From the NCBI GenBank assembly GCA_025201805.1, contig MU619298.1, forward strand, positions 107,910-171,909: DNA of 64,000 nucleotides, read 5' to 3'. Origin of the DNA: Parasitella parasitica NRRL 2501. Taxonomy: Eukaryota > Fungi > Mucoromycota. Both the position numbers and the translations under genes were made by a program. The notes under the pieces are model-generated. The model ran no database searches. It saw only the letters and a list, made by a program, of their open reading frames with translations, and was not told the DNA's origin. Positions 30,122 through 45,250 of this stretch are shown in pieces. The first letter of the stretch is position 1, and the number at the start of each line of letters is the position of its first letter.

Positions 30122-31754
30122 TTATTATTTTTTACTTTCTTTCTTTTTAGAAGAGACGAAAAGAAAGAGAAAAAGGGAAAGAAAAGAACTGAATATACTC
30201 TCCTAATTATATAAGCAAAAAACAAAAACAAAATCATGAGCTGGAAGAAAGATTCCGACTTGGCCAATCATACAAACTGTCTTATCAGGATCAAATTGAT
30301 TTTAGGTATTTGTATTATCTTAACCAATGAAAAAATTTGTATTAGATCAAATAATAAAGATAAGCAATCTAATAACACTCCTTTGTTAAAAAACTGTTGG
30401 TAGTTGATAAGATCTATGAATTTAACAAATAATCTGCCACCTTACTCCTTCCCTGATCTTCTCCTTGAATACAGCAGCCACGATCCAGTTTCAATACCAA
30501 ATGCCTTCTATTACATAAATTAAGCATTATTCGATTACATGCTGGCCCGACATTTTCCGACTCGTTTATCAAAATATTACTGTTTTACAAAAAAAAAAAA
30601 AAACAGTTCATTCCCACAACAAGAAATTATGCATCACATGCTTAAAATGTGTTTTATGTTTATTTCAATGATAAATACGCCTAATCCAAGTCGGGATCAT
30701 CCAATCATTACGCCATCTTTGTATCTCTTTGTTTAGCAAAACAGGAACACCAATCTGTCATATACGTCACAGGGATGATAGTGAAATACTCCTTTTGGGA
30801 ATTGCGAGACGATTTCCAATTGTTTCTGGGTTTACTGCATAATTGGTCATACAAACATTTATTTTATTAGAAATCATACTTGGTCTAATCCTTATTCAAT
30901 ATTTATCATGGGCTTTAACAGAATTTACCCACTCTTTATAGAGTTTTATCTCCAACATATCAGTAGAGCTTTTTATCAAAGCATTCTGTCTAATTTCTTT
31001 TCTTTTGCCAAAAAATGGTTTATGAGTGTGCAAGAAAGACTATTTTTTTAGCACCATATGCATGATTCTGGGACTAAAATTTTCATAAAATGACGACCCC
31101 CGCCATTAGTTCAGGAGAACTAAGCATAAATCTTCATCACAGGCATTTGCATCTCAGTAAACATTGTATCCCAAATTAAGCTTTGTTTAAATCAAATGTT
31201 TGCCTTAACAGTGAACGAGGTTGGTTAACTGTCAGCACAGAAAAGGTTCCGCAGAAGGTACTAGCCTACATGTTTATTCAATGCGCTGATCTGCCCGGTG
31301 CTAAGGTTAAATGTCACCTGGTTATTCTACAATAAAAGCAGCTTGATAATGGGATGCGTTGTATAAGGAACCATCTATTTGGGTTCTACCTGTTCTAGGA
31401 CTTTTCGATGAATGATCCGCTTTCATAATGATTAGCTGATTAAATATGGGTAGGTCTTGCTATGACTAATACTGTGTGATAATTTTTTTTTGACAATTGA
31501 ATATCAAACAAGATTTGATTGTATCCATACATTACTTCATGTAGATTCATTCGATATAAACAGACAACTTCTTGTCAATCAATAAAATCGTTAGTTTTGT
31601 ATCAGGTAATTAAGTCTTTATTACCACCTCAATTTCATTATCATAAACAATCGTCTTCTGTGCCAATTTCAAGACCTGGTACAAATAAATACCAATTACT
31701 GCGTCCTGTTTTGTATATTTATAGGCTGTCATTTTACAGGTTTTCGGAAAAAAA

Positions 31755-34125
31755 TTAAGTAAACGATAAAAGTCATAGTAATTGTGATAATATATATTAG
31801 GGTTTCTTGTAACAAACCCTTTTATTTCTGATAAAAGCCAAGAAGTTTCTGAGAGAAGAGAAATGTCTCCTTTAAAAGATTTTTAAGTGGGGATTTTCAT
31901 ATTTTGAGAAAAAGAGTAATTGCTTTGTTTCATTCATAGTGAAAACACAAAGAAAATATGTTGTGAAATAAGCTCTCTGGAATGGTTCAAAAATGTGGGT
32001 CTTAACAAAGCCAGCGTAGATTTTAGGCGTCTAATTTTTTGATCTAAGCGTACTTTAGTGGGTTATTGTCAGAAAAAAAGACGAAATCGTAAGAAAATAG
32101 TGTTTAGCGATTTCAAACACAAAAACAAGTAATTTAAAGTAATGCATTATACTATAAGACACCTTTTCATTACATGTTTGCATAGCTTAAAGCAAGTTTT
32201 TGTACTTTACAAGTTGACATCAGATGAAGATAGCGCTTTTTCCAACTTTTTTCGGAAAAGTATTTTTTCAAAATCGGAGCGTGAGATCGTCAGGCCAGGT
32301 ACAGACATACAAGTACTGCCGTTGGAAAGCCAAGAAGCACACCATTTAAATAAATTAGGTTTCAAATGTTTTTATCTTGAATTGGGAAGCTATGTCTTCT
32401 CAAAGATATTGCTTTCTTCAGAAAAAACACCATTTTTCTTTGATAACGGAGATTAAACGCATCCAAAACCAGGAAGGAAGAATTCTTTCAGAAACTCCAT
32501 TTGGACAATTAAAAAACAAAATTACTTCTTTAAGGCAAGATATCATCTTCTCATACTATGCGCACCACGGCTGTCGGTCTATGATAATAGCTGTCTTTTT
32601 GGGCGCTCTACACGATGGTATTATTTTATAATTTCTCGTATGCTTATGGAAGGAATTATATAGAGAAAACCTCAAAACAGATCAAGAGGGAAAAGTCAAT
32701 ATTTTGCTTAATCACAGCGCATTTTCAATCTTTCAGCTCAAGGAATGGTCTTTTGCGATCATTTTCCGCTAATATATGACATAGTAAAAAGTTGCATTTT
32801 TGAGGTCAAAATCGAGGATAATGCATAATCAATGATTTTGGATGGGTGGATACAAGGAAAAAATCGAAAAAATCCGTGATTTTGCATCGAAAAAAAAATC
32901 ATGCTCAAATTGCGCCAAAATCATATATAATCTAGTTTTTTCCTAATGGATACTATTTCTGGTGTTTTCAGGGCACTTTTGATTATGAAAATCAATCAAA
33001 AAATGGCACACAAAGCTAAAGTTCTTGATTTTAAGCTGTAAAAACATCCATCTGGAGATGATATCACGTCAATATCAGTTCTAGTACATGACACAGCCCT
33101 TTAAAGTAAGTATTTTTGATGCCACATGTAGTTGGAAGCGAAGAGGACTATTGATAAATATAATGATTTGCTGTAATGACGCCTTGTGATTTGTGAATAA
33201 TTCAAAAGTTGCTAATTGCTAGTGACAGAGAAGCTCTATTACCATTTTCACTTATAATAATGCCTAATGTCAGTTCAAGAGTCCCTTTTTTGTGATCTTA
33301 GCACTAAACATGTCAAATGGAGGTTAGAATTGAGGTTGAGAGTAATTTTACTAACAAAAGTTAAGCTTCATTCTAAGCCTATGGTAAGTTCCAGGTTCCA
33401 GGTTCCAGGTTCCAGACTTAGTCACTGTACTGCAGAGTACCAAATTCTAAGTGGGGGATTACTTGCTATACCAAACACATTTTTGTGCACCAACCCGTTC
33501 GTTATAACTAGTCCCGACTGTATATTCTTTCCTTGATATTAGATATGCTGCCTTAACTCAACAGATAAAACATAAAATAATAATGCGAAGTTATATAAAA
33601 TAGATGTTTTTATTTACTGAATCTGCTGTGATTTTTCATTGTGTAGATGTATAATTTGGCGGATACGTACAAATTAATGCTTTTTAGTATATGCAGTTTG
33701 ATACTTTGATACTATGATGGTTCTGTGGTTTAAGTCTAAATACATATGCAGTTCTATAGACTTGTCTAAATATTTGAGTTTATTTAGATGTCTAATATCT
33801 AACGGAAATATCTGAAACAATTTATCAATTATGAATTTCAAACAATTTTGTATTGTGGCCCGTTTGATCAAAAATAAAATAATTAGGGCGTCGTAATTTC
33901 GCATATCATTATAAAAGGTTCCCTATTCTTGGGCGTTTTCAGTATAAAATAGAAGCCTGAAAATGTGATTGTATTTAATACTTTTTGTCCCTACTCGAAA
34001 TATTCTTAGGAAGACATTTCTCTTGTCTCAGAAACTTCTCAGCTTTTATCAGAAATAGAAGGTTTGTTATCGGAAACCCTAATATATATAAGCACGAACA
34101 TCGCGACCTTTATCATTTACTTGTA
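31755..34125. mobile_element. Decayed DNA-transposon-like region bounded by diverged ~150-bp inverted repeats
   Basis: 31790-31895 (TATATATTAGGGTTTC...GAAATGTCT) is the diverged reverse complement of 33985-34090, and weaker similarity extends ~40 bp outward. No intact ORF inside. Confidence 0.6.
33388..33415. repeat. 7-bp tandem repeat (GTTCCAG)x4
   Basis: gttccaggttccaggttccaggttccag. Confidence 0.9.
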
Positions 34126-35506
34126 GAAGACAAATTTGTATTGAAACTAGCAGTGTTATTATTTTCTAGGACAAGTCTTGATGCATAAATCATGGCTTTT
34201 TTCAACTATTTTTATTAGGCTCATCTACTTGAAAAAGCCCTGGAAGCTTTCTTGATACCATGTCCTTCTTTAATTTAGTCTTTGGTACCTTCGATTGATT
34301 AAAATCTGATAACCAACATGTTGTGTTCTTTTTTGGCACCAGATTTTGGATTTGATTGACACTTTATTAAGAATATCTCTAGAAACTATCATAACATAAT
34401 ATACCTTTGTTCCAAATGTATTAATAAAATATTAAAAATTACATCTAATCGTATATACTGAAAGCAACTCTCTTTCCAAAAATCTGGATTAAATAGAAAT
34501 ATGCTTTTTGTATAAAAGCTGATACCCAATTAATAAATACCTAAAATGGTATCCTGTATCACAGTTAATGCTTTCGATCAAAGTACACCATAGAAGACAA
34601 AATGTTCATTTTACCTTGTAGATCCTCATAAAAAAGTATTGAAAATCGATGGTTTTTTTTTCACAGATTTTTTAGGTGGAAATGCATTCGTTAATAGTTA
34701 TCCGTTTCCGGAAGCTATTCGGTGTAATTCTTAGTACTTGAATCAGTCGGAAAGAGGGCAACTTGCCTTAGAATTATGAGAAAATAAGCACATATAGTAT
34801 TAGAGATTGTAATGTCTACTTATTATTGAATTTTGTAACGCCCTCAAAACGATAATATCTATTCTTTGGAAAAAAAAAGTAATTTTTTGGTGTGTAAGAT
34901 ATGTTTTTTCTTGTATTAACTAAATATTTGACTTACTAATTGATTAATAATCATTTACAAAGAGATTCAAGGAAAGAGCATTTTCCAAAATAATAACTGT
35001 TCACATAGCACATCATCCATCGTTTGAAAAATGCGAAGAGCCGAAAAGGGAATTTAGCATTATCTGGAGTATGCATTGAGCAGGCTTGCGGATAGATATT
35101 TCTTCCTTTGATCGTTTATGCAAAACTTTTAACGACGTTGATTGGCGAAAGCTTGAAAATTCCACCAGGCTCCCCCCCCCCCTCCCTTCTTCCCAAATAA
35201 ATTTCGCAGCAATTAGCAATGAATTTGATCTCAATAAGCTCAAGACGAGTTCAAATCCTAGCGCTAATTCCAAGCATTAATTCTTTTCTTTAATAAGGCT
35301 ATTTGTATCTTAAAGATCTTTAGATAAACTCTTAAAAAATAACGTCAAATGTCAAGTCTATCATGTAATGGTTGATTACTAACGCCAACATACCAACGTG
35401 TTAATTTAAGAGCCGTAGCCAATTGTTTTCCCATTGAACAATTGGACAAGATACATAACAGGCTCTTTTCTTCGTTTCTTCTTCTTTCACATTTTATACA
35501 ATAATA

Positions 35507-38500
35507 ATGAGCCACTCATTTCTAATTCATGTGTCAAAAACAATACCTCGTTCCAAAGTGAATCAGGCTATTTGGTCACAACTTCAATTACCAGCGGCTT
35601 CAAAACCATTGAATTTACGTTCATTTTCAACTAGCAGCAGCCAAGGAAACGTGTCTATCTGGGGTGGTGAGAGTGTAGCGAGAGCTGTAAATAAGAACCC
35701 AAGCCAATCTTTGTACATTGGACTTGAACCTATCCGTAATGCAGCCATATTACGCCGGGCTGCGTCTACATATGCACCTGCTGAAATGAAAGATCGTGAC
35801 CCGAAAGACAACCCTTCTGATCAAGCGCCTCCACCCGCCAATAATGGAGGAAATGCTACCGGTGGAAACGAAGGAGGCAACAATAACGCCGGCAGTAATA
35901 ACGGAAGTGGAGATGGCAAATCAAGTAAGAGCCACTCATGGGATGTGGTTGATAATCAGCTTCAAAAGCCAACTGTGCCCGAGGTGTATCCCCAGGTCTT
36001 GGCCCTCCCTATTGCTGGTCGACCCTTATTTCCTGGATTTTACAAGGCTGTTGTCATTAAAGAACCAACTGTAACTGCAGCAATCAAAGAGCTGATGAAA
36101 CGTGGTCAGCCTTATGTCGGCGCTTTTCTTTTAAAGGATGAAGGATTAGACGTAGATACAATCACAGACATTGACCAAGTACACAAAGTGGGTGTCTTTG
36201 CACAGATTACAAGTGTTTTCCCCGCAACAGCTGGAAAGGAAGAGTCTGGATTGACTGCAGTTCTGTACCCCCATAGACGTATCAAGATCAATGAACTATT
36301 ACCCATCAAACAAAAACACACCATCGCAGCTGTAAAAGAGGTCGCTGAAGATAAGCAAGTCGTGGCCGAACAGAGCGAACAAGCTATTGAAAAGGTGTCA
36401 AAGAAAACAGAGTCTGAATTCGAACCTGACAAAGTAGCTGCACAAAAAACTGGTAATTATGACAGTTGGCCCTTTCTTGACATTTGATCTAACTTTTTGT
36501 TAATTTGTGGTAGACGAATTCCTGTCCGACGAAGCAGCAGCAGCTGCGTCTACAGAGGCCAGCAAGTCAGACGCACAGTACGCCACCTCATTTTTAGCCG
36601 CTGATTATGCCGTATCACTTGTGAATGTCGATAATTTTGTAGAGCCAGAATTTTCCAAAAAGAGCCCTTATATTCGCGCAGTTACATCTGAAATTGTGTC
36701 AGTTTTCAAAGAAATTGCATCATTGAATCCTCTCTTCAGAGACCAGATTGCTAGCTTCTCCATGTCGCAATCCGCCGGTAACGTCTTTGATGAGCCCTCA
36801 AAATTAGCTGATTTTGCTGCTGCGGTCTCTGCCGGCGAATCATTGGAACTGCAAGAAGTCTTGGAAACGTTGCCTGTGGAAGAAAGACTTCAGAAGTCGC
36901 TTGTCGTCCTAAAAAAGGAATTAATGAACGCACAGCTGCAAAATAAGATTTCCAAGGATGTCGAGTCAAAGATTGCCAAACGTCAACGTGAGTATTACTT
37001 GATGGAACAGTTGAAGGGTATCAAAAAAGAACTTGGGTTGGAAAGTGATGGTAAAGATAAGCTGGTGGAAGGGTTTAAAGAAAAAGCCACCAAGCTCGCT
37101 ATGCCAGCTGCAGTCAAGAAAGTCTTTGATGAAGAGATCAACAAGCTTGCTCATCTCGAGCCTGCTGCGTCCGAGTTCAATGTTACTCGCAATTACCTTG
37201 ATTGGATCACTCAAATCCCTTGGGGTCAACGCTCGCGTGAAAACTACAACATTCTCCACGCAACTACCGTTTTGGATGAAGATCACTATGGCTTAAAGGA
37301 TGTAAAGGACAGAATCTTAGAGTTTATTGCTGTCGGCAAATTGAGAGGTACTGTTGAGGGCAAGATTCTCTGTCTTTCTGGACCTCCAGGTGTGGGCAAA
37401 ACGTCTATCGGTAAAAGCATTGCTCGTGCATTGGACCGCGAGTTCTTCCGTTTCTCTGTTGGTGGGTTGACTGACGTTGCCGAAATCAAGGGCCATCGTC
37501 GTACATATGTTGGTGCTATGCCTGGTAAAGTGATTCAAGCATTGAAGAAAGTCCAGACCGAAAACCCTTTAATTTTGATTGACGAAATCGATAAACTTGG
37601 TAGAGGCCACCAAGGTGATCCCTCTTCTGCTCTTCTGGAGCTATTGGACCCCGAGCAAAATAGCAGTTTCTTGGATCACTACATGGATGTCCCTGTTGAT
37701 TTATCTAAGGTTCTCTTTGTGTGTACAGCCAACGTCCTGGATACCATTCCAGGCCCTCTCTTAGATCGTATGGAAGTCATTCAACTCTCTGGATACATTG
37801 CTGAAGAAAAAGCTGCAATTGCAGAAAAGTACCTTGCTCCTGCTGCCAAAACTGCTGCAGGTCTCGAGAATGTCAACGTCAACTTGACCCCTGAAGCTAT
37901 CGATGCTTTGATCAAGAACTACTGCAGAGAAAGTGGTGTTCGTAATTTGAAAAAGCACATTGATAAAGTTTTCCGCAAGGCAGCTTTCAAGGTTGTGCAG
38001 AAAATTGGCGAAGATAAAAAGGAGACTGTTGAAGAAAAGAAAGAAGAAGGCAACACCGAGACCAACAAAGAGGACAAAGATGTTCGAAAGCCTCTTGTTG
38101 TGTCAGAGAAAGTTTCTATTGATATCAACAATGAGAATTTGAAGGACTATGTCGGCCCTCAAGTATACCAAGCAGAGCGTCTCTACGAGAAGACACCTCC
38201 TGGTGTTGTTATGGGTTTAGCATGGACCAGTATGGGTAAGTTGCAGCCATGTGCCAAGAAAGTCAATTTATTAACAAGCTCTGTAAACTAGGCGGCACTT
38301 CTCTTTACATTGAATCTGTTTTAGAGTCTTCTCTTAGCCCTAAGTCTACACCTCATCTTTCAAAGACTGGTCAACTTGGTGATGTAATGAAGGAATCTAC
38401 TAGCATTGCTTACACATACGCCAAGTCGTTGATGGCTACTCATTTCCCGAAAAACAAATTTTTTGATAAAGCCAAGGTTCATTTGCATTGTCCTGCAGGT

Positions 38501-38947
38501 GCTGTTCCCAAAGATGGTAAGTGATGGTATAAAGTATACATGGCCAGACTTGCTTATTTCTTCTGGATGTTTGTAGGACCGTCTGCTGGTGTCACAATGA
38601 CTACTGCATTAATGTCGTTAGCTCTTAACCAACCTGTCAGTTCCAACATTGCCATGACAGGTGAACTGACTGTTACCGGTAAAGTGTTAAAGATTGGTGG
38701 TTTGAAGGAAAAGACAATTGCTGCCAAGCGATCCAAGGTGGATACAATTTTATTCCCCAAAGATAACCAAGCTGACTGGGACGAGTTGCCTGAATATATC
38801 AAGGAAGGCTTAACTGGAGTTCCTTGTGACACTTATAAGGATGTCTACGATGTCGTTTTTGGCGATATTAAAAAAGAACAGGTTGAGAGTGTCTGGAGCG
38901 ATGTGTTGACAGAAAAAAATGAGGAGAAGGAAAAAGCCGATGCTTGA
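35507..38947 (+). CDS. PIM1: Mitochondrial Lon protease
   Basis: N-domain RPLFPGFYK, Walker [10 protein letters not shown], Walker B ILIDEIDK, catalytic PKDG|PSAG split by an intron, and IGGLKEK. Confidence 0.97.
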
Positions 38948-39450
38948 TTATAAATTAGCTAGAATCACATGCACAACTGCCTTTTTTTTTTTATAGATTT
39001 AGTATATGTTTTGCTTCCAACTTGTATAAATTATATTTACAACAATAATCATATGCTTGTAGGCACAAAAGTTGGGGATTTTAGCATGGATAATGAAATG
39101 AATGAATGCCTTAATTTCTGTACGACATTTGATATACTTCAGAATACATTTCAATACATATACGAACGTATACCGCTTCACTACTATCATAGCCATGAAA
39201 ATCAGCGTGTAATGTTGGAATAATAGCAAACTTGAAGAGTTATAAATGCTCGATATCTTTATATATCCAACGAGCAGGTTAATGACATATTGTCAAGAGA
39301 TCTACCGAAATTAAATTACAGTATTTGACTTTGGTGTAAATTAATGTCCACATCCATTTCCCCCTTGATACATATTGATATAAGTTACAGAATTACTTTT
39401 CTTATCTGTTATTTCTTTTTCTTTTTTTCTTTTCTTCTCTCATCACGAAA

Positions 39451-39857
39451 ATGGAAAAGAAAAGGGCTCATCACATATCAGCACCCATTGCGCCAAACTA
39501 TCGACTTGGCCATTCCACCTCAGATTCGCTTTTTGACGAATGTCCACCACCAGCATATCAGCCTCCACATCATATTGCTGCCAATATCACGGAACCACCG
39601 CAATCGTTGCAGAGTAAAAGTATCCAAAACTTGAACAGCTTCAACCAAATTAACTTTTATCAACCTACTCCACCACCGCAAACTGTAATCGTTCATCGCC
39701 AACCTACTAGATCAAAAGATGCATGCTGTTGGGGATGGTAAATAATTCACATACAGTTAATAATTGCAAAATACCTGTACCAACTTTATTTTTATTTTTT
39801 GTATTATACAGCTTAGCAGCATTATGTCTTTGTTTTGGAGCGAAAGAATGCTGCTGA
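39451..39857 (+). CDS. CYSTM (cysteine-rich transmembrane module) small protein
   Basis: PPPAY and P/Q-rich N-terminus; spliced C-terminus SKDACCWGCLAALCLCFGAKECC*. Confidence 0.8.
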
Positions 39858-40008
39858 TTAGCATTTATAGAATCCTTATAGAATATTACAACTAGAATGT
39901 ATACCCTTCCCCTCTTTCCCTTTTGTCATTAACATTAAACACCATGGTCGAGATAAAACGTTCGTTTATTTAACTTGTGTACTACCCTTTGCCTCGTGAA
40001 TTAGTTTG

Positions 40009-43000
40009 CTATTTCCATTGAAAGAAATCGCAGCTATGCTCATCGTTCGGTCCATCCTTCGGTTCAGTTGGTCTCGAACATATATAAAACACTCTGCCAG
40101 TATTGGGTCCTTTCTTGGATACGATAATTTCAACACAGGGTTGTTTATGGAATGTGCAAGTTGGTATTGCAGGTGCTTTAAAGATCGACGTCCATGCTTT
40201 TGCTGTCACCTGCTTTTCTTGAGCTTCCTCGACCAATGCATTTAGATCAAAATCTTGCTGCTGATCTTCATGTTGGGGCAATTGCTGCTTTGTTGACGTT
40301 ATGTTTGAAATCGTAGCCGTGTCCGTAGTAGTGTCTGTCTTTTCGGTAAAATAATTCGCTAATGCTGTAATGGGAGCGGGTTTCTTATTGAATGTTGCGG
40401 TTTTCTTTGATTGTTTTGTATTAAATGATGTCAAGCTGAAGAAAAATAAGTTGGGCCATTACAGAAAAAATTGGGACGCCAATAATGAAAATGGGACAAA
40501 CAATAAAATTTGGGGCACTCATTTGAAAATGGGATAAAAAAATAGGACATTTATGTTTTTAGTTATGTAGGCACATCTTGGAATACAGTTTTATACAGTT
40601 ACAGTTACGGTTATGGTAACTAATTGTTTCTTAATCCTTTTATTAAATATGTCTCTACCAAAAAATTTAGCACCTGGAAAAGACCTGATGTCAAAACGGA
40701 TTATACAGGATCCAAAAGTAATTGACCATATTACCGAGGCATTAACAGAAACACAAGATGACTATTTTGTTGGTAATTGCGAATGGAGGAATGGGATCCG
40801 CTCAGACATAGTTTTGAAGCCAAAATCTTCTATGGATCTCCTCCCCCTCTCATCATAGTAGAGATTCAACATAATGTAAACAAAAAGTTTCTAAAAAGAG
40901 CTTTTGGATATTGTTTGCAAGCAAGTACAAGATACGATGTAGAGCCAATTCTGCTCATTATATTTACAAGAAAGCTCAATCAAAAAATTCAAGACGATGC
41001 AATAGATAGTCGGCTTCCAGGCATCTACTCATACTTTTGCAAACCATGGGCAATAGACACACTACGATTGTTAAGAAATAACCCAAGTACGGCTAAAGGG
41101 TAAAGTGGGCTTGTCAGGTTTTGTGTAAAATTATCTTCTCACATGATTAGACACTCTACTACCCATGGTTTGCAAAAGTATGAGTAGATGCCTGGAAGCC
41201 GACTATCTATTGCATCGTCTTGAATTTTTTGATTGAGCTTTCTTGTAAATATAATGAGCAGAATTGGCTCTACATCGTATCTTGTACTTGCTTGCAAACA
41301 ATATCCAAAAGCTCTTTTTAGAAACTTTTTGTTTACATTATGTTGAATCTCTACTATGATGAGAGGGGGAGGAGATCCATAGAAGATTTTGGCTTCAAAA
41401 CTATGTCTGAGCGGATCCCATTCCTCCATTCGCAATTACCAACAAAATAGTCATCTTGTGTTTCTGTTAATGCCTCGGTAATATGGTCAATTACTTTTGG
41501 ATCCTGTATAATCCGTTTTGACATCAGGTCTTTTCCAGGTGCTAAATTTTTTGGTAGAGACATATTTAATAAAAGGATTAAGAAACAATTAGTTACCATA
41601 ACCGTAACTGTAACTGTATAAAACTGTATCCCAAGATGTGCTATTCATCCCAAATTTTATTGTTTATCCCATTTTCATTATTGGCGTACCAATTATTTCT
41701 GTAATGGGCCTAGTTTTTTTTTGCGGCTCAACCTATTTTCTTCAGCTGTACTTGCAGATCTTTTTAAAGAGGAAGTGGGTTGAGCTGACAAAGATACTGG
41801 CGGTTGAGAAGAAGAGGGTATGTTTTGTGGAAGTGAGGATGGCTTCCCAAAGTAACTTGACAATTTTTTTTGTTTAAATTCTGAAAAGTTAGACGTCAAT
41901 AAAGGCGAAGTGTAAAACGGCGCATGGTGATCTTGGATATCTTGATTTATCTGCAAGAAATCAGCATACACAGGACAGTGATCCGAACCAAAAATATCCG
42001 ATTGAATGTCTGCATATTTAAACCATGGCTTCAGTCCTTTGGAAGCCAGTATATAGTCGATTCTTGTGCCTATATAGAATTAGAGTTGGTTTCATGTAAC
42101 AAAATGCTTCAATATGTATTATATACCGAAATTTCCAGGTCTGTTTACGTGTGTGTTACGCGATAAAAGTTAATTGTCTAATTTGATTTCCTAAAACAAG
42201 TTACATGCCTCGCATTTAATCTTGTGTTCCAACCTTAAAAGTTACAGATAAATAAATAGTATAATATAACTGATTGAATTTGCTTACACGTGTACATTTT
42301 TGAGCGATTAGGATGGTATAGACGAGCCATGTCAATCAGTGGACCTTTGGGGTCAATCATGTTATCCAGCCAACGTCTATGTGGTAAGTCTTTAAAATCA
42401 AAAATATTATTGTCTTTCATGCTTTGTTTGGCATCAAAATGGTCAATTTCTTCGTGTACCGCATTTATATCGCCTACAAGCAATACCTGCTTGCCATGGT
42501 TTAAAAACGACTCGATCCGTTTCTGGACACAATGATGATAATCCATCTTGAAATCAATTCTTGTCTCGTTGGAATCATTTGGGAAGTAAATGTTGAGCAA
42601 GGCAAAGAACCCAAAGTCCAGAATGATGCAGCGACCTTCATCATCTAGTATTTTAGCTGGGGTACCCAAATCGTATACAAAGTCGTTATCAGTATCTAAT
42701 ACGCCAGTAATGCCTTCGTAAATTCGCCTAGGCTGCATAACGGTGTCTTTGACATATACCGCCACTCCAGAATATCCCAATTTGACTTTAGAAAAGGAGA
42801 AATAGGCGTGGTAGCCTGGCACAAGAGCCATTTCTCGTGTTAGCTTTGACCGTTGACATTTAACTTCTTGAAAACTATGTTTGTGAATATGAATATCGCA
42901 CATTGAGATATATAATCATAGTCAATGTACCAAATAATGTCAGAATCCAGCGCGTCGAGCAAGACCTTGCGAAAAGTTTAGTATTAATTGACAGAATACA

Positions 43001-43095
43001 TCATATAGCATTACTTTGTACGACTTTGTATCAGACCACGGATGATACTGCAATGTGGTGGCTAATCCATTGACATTCCATGTTAAAACTCTCAT
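40009..43095 (-). CDS. APN2: Class II AP endonuclease Apn2/APE2, last exon interrupted by a 1312-bp insertion
   Basis: MRVLTWNVNG, CFQEVK, GYSGVA, DDEGR, GDIN, RIDYIL, GSDHCPV, PIP-box-like QKKLSSYF and C-terminal zf-GRF (CTFH...GPNTGRVFYIC...CDFFQW). Confidence 0.93.
40649..41050 (+). pseudogene. Truncated, frameshifted Rpn/PDDEXK-like nuclease fragment (inverted duplicate copy)
   Basis: DLMSKRIIQDP...RSDIVL / IIVEIQH...FLKRAFGY: a PD-(D/E)XK-type D...ExQ pattern split across two frames. Confidence 0.6.
41051..41563 (-). pseudogene. Rpn/PDDEXK-like nuclease fragment, longer copy continuing through the spacer
   Basis: Same protein and same frameshift as the plus copy. The frame continues in the spacer as VVECLIM*EDNFTQNLTSPLYPLAVLGLFL. 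Confidence 0.6.
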
Positions 43096-43149
43096 TGTAT
43101 TCTGCTCACAAACAAGAATACGCACTAGCACGCAAGTCAATTTTGCTGG

Positions 43150-43875
43150 AATGCAATTCCTTGTGGTGAGCCTTCCAAAAATGCAGTCAACACATTAGAT
43201 TTTGATTCTATAGTTTCCCAACGAGATACAGTATTTTGATTCATATTTACAGGGACCTTATTGCAGCCGTGGCAGTTCATAAAAACAAGGATCCCTTTAG
43301 AAAACAACTGCGTTCTGTGGTATCCAGCATTGAACAAAGGCTATCGACGTTAGAATCACAGTTGGCCATGAATGCCACTCAGTCAAACAGTAAGATGGAT
43401 GAGATCTTGAATCGCATTAGTGATAGCTCCACTGGTCGTGCCCCTTTGAATGTCAAAATGAAAACTTCAGCCGGTGGAGATTACCAGATTCTTACAATAA
43501 CAGCAACTGCTGCATCAACTTCGACATCTCAAGCGCCAATTTCTGTGGTTGAGACTGACAATTCAGTAGAAGTGCTCCCACATAAAGAATGAGCAGAGAG
43601 TCAACTACGCTTTTTCGGCTGTGGAATGAATGGCACAATGGCATAGGTGGTGGGGATTCGGTTCAATGGATGGATAAGAATTACCCTGGGTGATTTTCAA
43701 AAGATAAAACTTATTACTCGCGAAGACGTCGTATCATCATGACGATCAAATACGCTGAGGAGAAAAACTTTGGGGAGGTCACTGCTTTAGACATTGCTGA
43801 GGCACATTGATTTCATCTTGGTAGGCCATTTGACTACTTAAGCAAACATCAAGACTCCATCTCTGCAGATGAATG
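43150..43875 (+). pseudogene. Crypton/NDC10-type element relic with a GCR1_C domain
   Basis: After ORF 43236-43592, a shifted frame reads MSRESTTLFRLWNEWHNGIGGGDSVQWMDKNYPG*FSKDKTYYSRRRRII, the GCR1_C pattern found in fungal Cryptons. Stops and frameshifts are present. Confidence 0.7.
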
Positions 43876-44655: not shown

Positions 44656-45250
44656 TTGATTGGTAGTCCTCGAAACCATTTGCTCTTCAAGCAGTCGAAA
44701 AGACCATCAGCAGTATCTCGTACTTATTTCTTGCTGATTCAGCCTTTTTTTTTTTTGCCTTACAATGGTATTGTTGAATTTGACTGGATTGAGCATGAAA
44801 GTTGCCAGATTGGAAAGAGAAAGTGGGACGGAGTGCTGTCCCTTGTAGATGATCGACAGATCACAATTGCTCTGGTGGAATTCTCTGGTGGCCTGAAGAA
44901 GATATCAAGTACGAAAGAGCTCAACGATACTCAAAAATCATATAAAGAGCTTGCTCAAGCTACTCGAAAACATTCCAGAATCAAAACAAAAACAAGTCTT
45001 TTGTATTCGATTCTATGGTATGGTAAGTCTTTTATTGGCCGCACAGTATGCAGAACTCACTGTATTAGACGAGCATATCTACTTTGAGCGGCTTGTTCAA
45101 TACACAGACAGCTACCTATTTCGCGACATAATAGCCTACATCACCAGTTCTTCCAATCGTCGCCGCATTATTGATTTTATCAATAAGGTTCCTTCAGTGT
45201 TAAAATGGAGAGATGCAAGCATTAAACCGAAGCACAGTCTCTTGGAATAA
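44656..45250 (+). pseudogene. Decayed restriction-endonuclease-fold (PD-(D/E)XK-like) protein fragment, probably mobile-element associated
   Basis: FDWIEHES...KWDGV...IALVEFSGG...D..K pattern; frameshifted, no clear 5' end. Confidence 0.5.

Follow-up and report, generated by a model that had tools for sequence, protein, structure and literature searches.

The window, a stretch of 64,000 nucleotides from Parasitella parasitica NRRL 2501 (contig MU619298.1, positions 107,910 to 171,909), carries on its minus strand a gene of the APE2 family, APN2, with five introns of 49 to 68 nt and a last exon that is split by an insert (Table 1). APN2 is found in one copy in the P. parasitica assembly, and its domain order (EEP, PIP box, zf-GRF) is the usual one for APE2/Apn2. 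The sequence QKKLSSYF fits the PIP-box consensus, Q-x-x-L-x-x-Y-F. Intron 4 (42141-42208) is of the GC-AG type in Parasitella and of the GT-AG type in five Mucor orthologues; the GC donor is accompanied by the gain of a +5 G, which looks compensatory. The Lon-APN2 block (window about 30800-43200) is inverted relative to Mucor species.

Table 1. Features of APN2 and of the element inserted in its last exon (window coordinates)
Feature	Positions	Strand	Basis or remark
APN2 exon 1	43015..43095	-	Alignment with five Mucor orthologue loci
APN2 exon 2	42931..42965	-	Alignment with Mucor orthologues
APN2 exon 3, bulk of ExoIII/EEP catalytic domain	42288..42874	-	PF03372; Mucor alignment
APN2 exon 4	42209..42233	-	Mucor alignment; GC donor on following intron, GT in Mucor
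APN2 mini-exon 5	42127..42140	-	Mucor alignment
APN2 exon 6, 5' part as far as the insertion (catalytic-domain end, PIP box, linker)	41749..42069	-	Alignment
PIP box QKKLSSYF, 5' of the insertion	41849..41872	-	Sequence match to consensus
TA target site, proximal copy	41749..41750	-	TA ahead of 27/27 family ends read
Non-autonomous Tc1/mariner-type element, 1316 bp	40433..41748	.	Terminal repeats common to the 5.3-kb element
Proximal terminal inverted repeat	41642..41748	-	Sequence comparison
Proposed donor AG/GTTGAG (GTTGGG in family ends)	41727..41734	-	Sequence
In-frame stop in proximal repeat, unspliced product 372 aa	41693..41695	-	Translation
Competing donor G/GTACGC, past the stop	41684..41689	-	Better than the proposed donor
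AATAAA, candidate early polyadenylation signal	41656..41661	-	Putative function
First of two inner foldback arms (487 nt), containing broken Rpn/PD-(D/E)XK-like cargo	41155..41641	.	Cargo identity a lead only
97-nt spacer (hairpin loop)	41058..41154	.	Foldback analysis
Second of the inner foldback arms; 99% complementarity between the two	40571..41057	.	Foldback analysis
Distal terminal repeat, with 19-nt deletion and branch-like TGTAAT	40433..40570	-	Alignment
Proposed acceptor AG	40436..40437	-	Sequence
Putative distal target-site copy, GA in place of TA	40431..40432	-	Reading suggested by the family
APN2 exon 6, 3' part, open to the native stop	40009..40430	-	Translation
zf-GRF domain in exon 6, 3' part	40015..40164	-	PF06839, E 2.6e-11

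In the catalytic exon, the window shows 100% identity to a public model from the same species, KAI8641083.1 (NCBI/JGI), which spans the insert by a different intron, 41856->40266. This model contains two or more errors, as it lacks exons 1 and 2 and mini-exon 5, and it also cuts the PIP box. Therefore, its bridging intron provides no support for splicing.

The insert lies at a TA in the APN2 linker, about 100 nt 3' of the PIP box. The orthologous position is empty in Mucor, where the last exon is continuous in 5/5 loci. For an empty allele from the same species, exact look-ups of the window proteins and the public model gave no match, nor did a search of metagenomes with the flank pattern. Judged by its termini, the insert is a dead, non-autonomous element of the Tc1/mariner type, because its ends match those of a 5.3-kb element on contig 125 and because TA precedes 27/27 of the family ends read. 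The relatives were found with the element ends as queries against the genome. Specifically, the contig 125 element has TA followed by CAGCTGAAGAAAATAGGTTGGG at both ends, shares 23/24 terminal bases with the APN2 insert, and contains fragments of HTH_Tnp_Tc3_2 and DDE_3. Related ends are also found in a 245-bp MITE, in an element on contig 153, and in a sister family of roughly 30 copies. That sister family (L067-L090; L091 509-4327) is young, about 3.8 kb long and TA-flanked, with ends CAGTTGACGAAACTAG. The 245-bp MITE, which belongs to the same clade (L045 995-1241), has a nested sister-family end and lies about 30 nt 5' of a long ORF, counted from its start codon.

The target-site duplication is seen as TA at the proximal end and at 26/26 other family ends, with GA at the distal copy. 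The distal end reads CAGCTT-GA where the family would lead one to expect CAGCTG-TA, and we infer that it was mutated after insertion. A reading in which insertion took place at A^T and duplicated nothing was dropped, since every family end read has TA; either reading gives an in-frame empty site. The insert thus resembles non-autonomous IS630/Tc1/mariner elements in its TA duplication, in ends that start with CAG, and in repeats common to an element with transposase fragments. It differs from them in its mutated distal end and target copy and in the absence of a transposase, the interior being a 487-nt foldback of broken nuclease-like cargo. The closest Atlas clusters to the broken gene inside the foldback arms are Rpn/Transposase_31-like, which is a lead only. 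Another broken frame that looks like a PD-(D/E)XK nuclease, with no Pfam match, is found on the plus strand upstream of APN2 (window 44656-45250). Long internal inverted duplications occur in three related elements (window 40571-41641; L041 814-1508; L094 651-1425), with arms of 487, 246, and 257 nt that are 97 to 99% identical. They may reflect template switching in gap repair or a habit of the assembly.

The first-pass annotation had proposed that the insertion can be spliced out of the APN2 mRNA in frame. Both candidate sites, a GT at 41732-41731 and an AG at 40437-40436, are indeed there, 16 nt inside one element end and 3 nt inside the other. Frames were checked by arithmetic and translation, and the exons were searched for domains one by one; on paper, the join of 41733 to 40435 is in frame and retains zf-GRF (PF06839). 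It is stop-free and falls within a poorly conserved linker. The footprint is larger than the 15-nt AEENS given earlier: because the element starts at 41748, after the TA at 41750-41749, and ends at 40433, it amounts to 16 + 3 + 2 = 21 nt and seven residues (AEENSLT) rather than five, provided that the distal CAGCTT-GA is read as a mutated CAGCTG-TA. The predicted protein has 494 aa with an empty site and 501 aa in the spliced form. An in-frame join is not strong evidence for splicing, because the frame would match one time in three given any GT and any AG; the acceptor at 40436 shares its frame with six other GTs of this exon as well.

The donor position and the pyrimidine tract with its AG represent the terminal repeat read forwards and backwards. 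The two sites are therefore ordinary terminal-repeat sequence and do not appear to have been shaped for splicing. Any insertion of a repeat of this type would leave 21 nt (16 + 3 + 2), stop-free in 2/3 phases. In the sister family, splicing at the same donor position and at that repeat's own TAG would leave 30 nt, likewise a multiple of three. The contig 9 MITE and the contig 153 element start with CAGGT and lack the acceptor of the APN2 insert; therefore, splice-like ends are not a family-wide design.

As the first-pass annotation had noted, the donor GTTGAG is weak: it matches the U1 consensus only at -2/-1 and at none of +3 to +6. The five native APN2 donors have 3 to 5 of 6 consensus matches, with A at +3 in all of them. 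GTTGGG is found at 26/26 other family ends, so the APN2 insert has lost the +5 G, which, judged from this comparison, is the wrong direction for a selected intron. The candidate intron is 1297 nt long, 20-fold longer than the native introns of 49 to 68 nt. Its acceptor is good, and the 19-nt distal deletion shifts the branch-like TGTAAT nearer to it.

Pairing of the arms had been expected to bring the two sites together. The predicted fold, a 487-bp near-perfect duplex at -1017 kcal/mol, does bring the element ends together, but it buries both splice sites in the terminal helix, where the GT, the AG, and the branch-like TGTAAT each have a predicted pairing probability of about 1.0. By this model, the duplex masks the splice sites instead of presenting them, although equilibrium folding may overstate the masking, as transcription passes the donor and the stop at a time when no hairpin can yet exist. 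The stop predicted for the unspliced transcript at 41695-41693 was borne out. Just past this stop lie two further signals, the competing donor at 41689 and the AATAAA at 41661; use of either would yield the truncated protein.

These observations lead us to favor, on balance, a truncated Apn2 without zf-GRF as the main product, with most transcripts unspliced at 41733->40435. The non-autonomous Tc1/mariner element is inserted at a TA in the linker; in most transcripts, translation would stop at 41693. The transcripts might end early at the A-rich signal of the proximal repeat or continue through the 1.3-kb hairpin, which would then be a substrate for Dicer or for decay. Two Dicers are encoded in the genome, making the hairpin a plausible source of small RNA. 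Because the insertion is 3' of the PIP box, the 372-aa product keeps the catalytic domain and the PIP box and loses only zf-GRF; it would be the working Apn2, with the absence of zf-GRF tolerated. Leaky splicing at a low level would be compatible with this truncation.

The notion that loss of zf-GRF needs rescue is weakened, by analogy, by APN2 of Phycomyces. In Phycomyces blakesleeanus, P. nitens, and Sporodiniella, the Apn2 models extend little further than the PIP box, which is the same architecture as that of the unspliced Parasitella product. A profile of 115 motifs detects no zf-GRF within 4 kb of P. blakesleeanus APN2 (Mucor control, E 1e-23). The P. blakesleeanus locus (L097 4001-5709), together with the similar P. 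nitens and Sporodiniella models, points to repeated zf-GRF loss in Mucorales. In vertebrates, zf-GRF of APE2 is required for resection and MMEJ, and APE2 lacking both PIP and zf-GRF still rescued BRCA1-deficient cells (PMC9900424). The Parasitella genome encodes a separate ExoIII/APE1-like gene on contig 26; no EndoIV-type Apn1 was detected in the genome search, and its absence may raise the value of a full-length Apn2.

The 41733->40435 junction is possible, yet the indirect evidence tends to disfavor it as the source of the main isoform. Efficient removal of 41732-40436 by the spliceosome, with a gain of seven residues, retention of zf-GRF, and the element exapted as an intron, appears unlikely, although the strong acceptor, the single copy of APN2, and a join that is in frame, free of stops, and placed in a linker of low conservation all speak for it. 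So does the intact downstream exon. Its 139 codons contain no stop and no frameshift, and all four zinc ligands are kept. In a branch codon model, the conserved core of this region has a dN/dS of 0.16 on the Parasitella branch vs 0.14 elsewhere, and neutrality over the whole of this long branch (dS 0.35-0.8) is rejected (p = 2e-4); a model that ends in a neutral period can be rejected only where that period exceeds about 0.055 substitutions per site. The downstream frame would survive 0.05 neutral substitution 41% of the time. The insertion itself is probably no older than 0.04 to 0.05 substitutions per site, an estimate based on the outer arms of the element, which differ at about 7/83 aligned positions, and on the imperfect repeats already present in young sister copies. 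Thus, selection on the downstream exon is a mild point for continued use and is compatible with a recent loss of function, as the test has no power below about 0.05, the likely upper bound of the age. Against efficient splicing also stand the weak and derived donor, the excess over native intron length, and the predicted pairing of both sites. Within zf-GRF, a near-invariant Gly (96% conserved) is replaced by Glu only in Parasitella among the Mucorales compared. An R-to-I change in the same domain was dropped as a sign of decay, its position being highly variable across fungi.

Still less probable is that the allele is effectively null or silenced, its hairpin transcript being diced or degraded while the APE1-like gene covers for it; such an insertion may be private to the strain. 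The near-perfect duplex, the two Dicers, and the backup gene fit this scenario, as do C147F and other changes at conserved sites in exon 3. However, the catalytic exons have a dN/dS of 0.05 to 0.07 on the Parasitella branch, where a neutral period above about 0.03 is rejected, and usable sites are kept in 5/5 native introns.

We give a slightly lower chance to zf-GRF being kept through some other junction, such as donor 41789 to acceptor 40436 or the 41856->40266 intron of KAI8641083.1. Further upstream, several GTs share a frame with the AG at 40436 or with later AGs, and the public model does use 41856->40266, but that model has the look of a gene prediction unsupported by transcripts, and the alternative donors are no better and imply longer introns.

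In animals, SOS splicing cuts Tc1 elements with paired repeats out of mRNAs; many of its sites are not GU-AG, and it needs RTCB, AKAP17A, and CAAP1 (PMC12779559). The APN2 insert shares with C. elegans Tc1 an exonic location in a poorly conserved region, paired inverted repeats (by prediction), and a possible rescue of function by excision. A spliceosome-independent, structure-directed excision of this kind is nonetheless very improbable here: the anatomy is that of the SOS trigger (PMC12779559), but the process has been described only in animals, and an exon-by-exon search of the Parasitella genome, which can miss genes (control positive in 10/14), gave no match to RtcB (PF01139). A search for CAAP1 also gave no match, with the control likewise blank.

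The term "introner-like," applied to the insertion in the first-pass annotation, does not hold as a claim about the family. Introner families comprise 5 to over 2000 copies with median lengths of 30 to 654 nt, annotated as introns, and in an Aureococcus family the element brings the donor as well as the acceptor, with a gain of 12 nt (PMC9860276). The APN2 insert is similar in that both candidate sites come from the element, near its ends, with a frame-restoring footprint that is a multiple of three, albeit with a weak donor. It differs in being a candidate intron, 1297 nt long, and in occupying one exonic locus: introners are found as multiple similar copies in different genes, and a search of the assembly revealed no second copy of this insert. 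Further, at 11 other two-ended family loci, a subset of the copies, long open frames on both flanks are absent, which places these loci outside coding exons. The APN2 insert would work like an Aureococcus-type introner only if spliced; by its sequence, it belongs with the non-autonomous Tc1/mariner elements and not with an introner family.

In a fungus with introns of about 55 nt, efficient in-frame removal of a 1.3-kb Tc1/mariner foldback through a non-consensus donor and duplex-buried sites is doubtful. If true, it would capture the birth of a hairpin intron in Mucorales, and the clade to which these terminal repeats belong would seem pre-adapted to being spliced in frame, whichever way the element is inserted. 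With splicing, the locus would show cleanly, at a single site, how a fungus with short introns gained one from a DNA transposon; as transposon-derived in-frame introns with small footprints have already been described, it would be a variant and not a new kind. If unspliced, the insertion is an ordinary transposon hit that cuts Apn2 to the form already seen in Phycomyces. The shortened Apn2 would then probably still be useful, and the locus would amount to a modest natural experiment on the need for zf-GRF in fungal Apn2.
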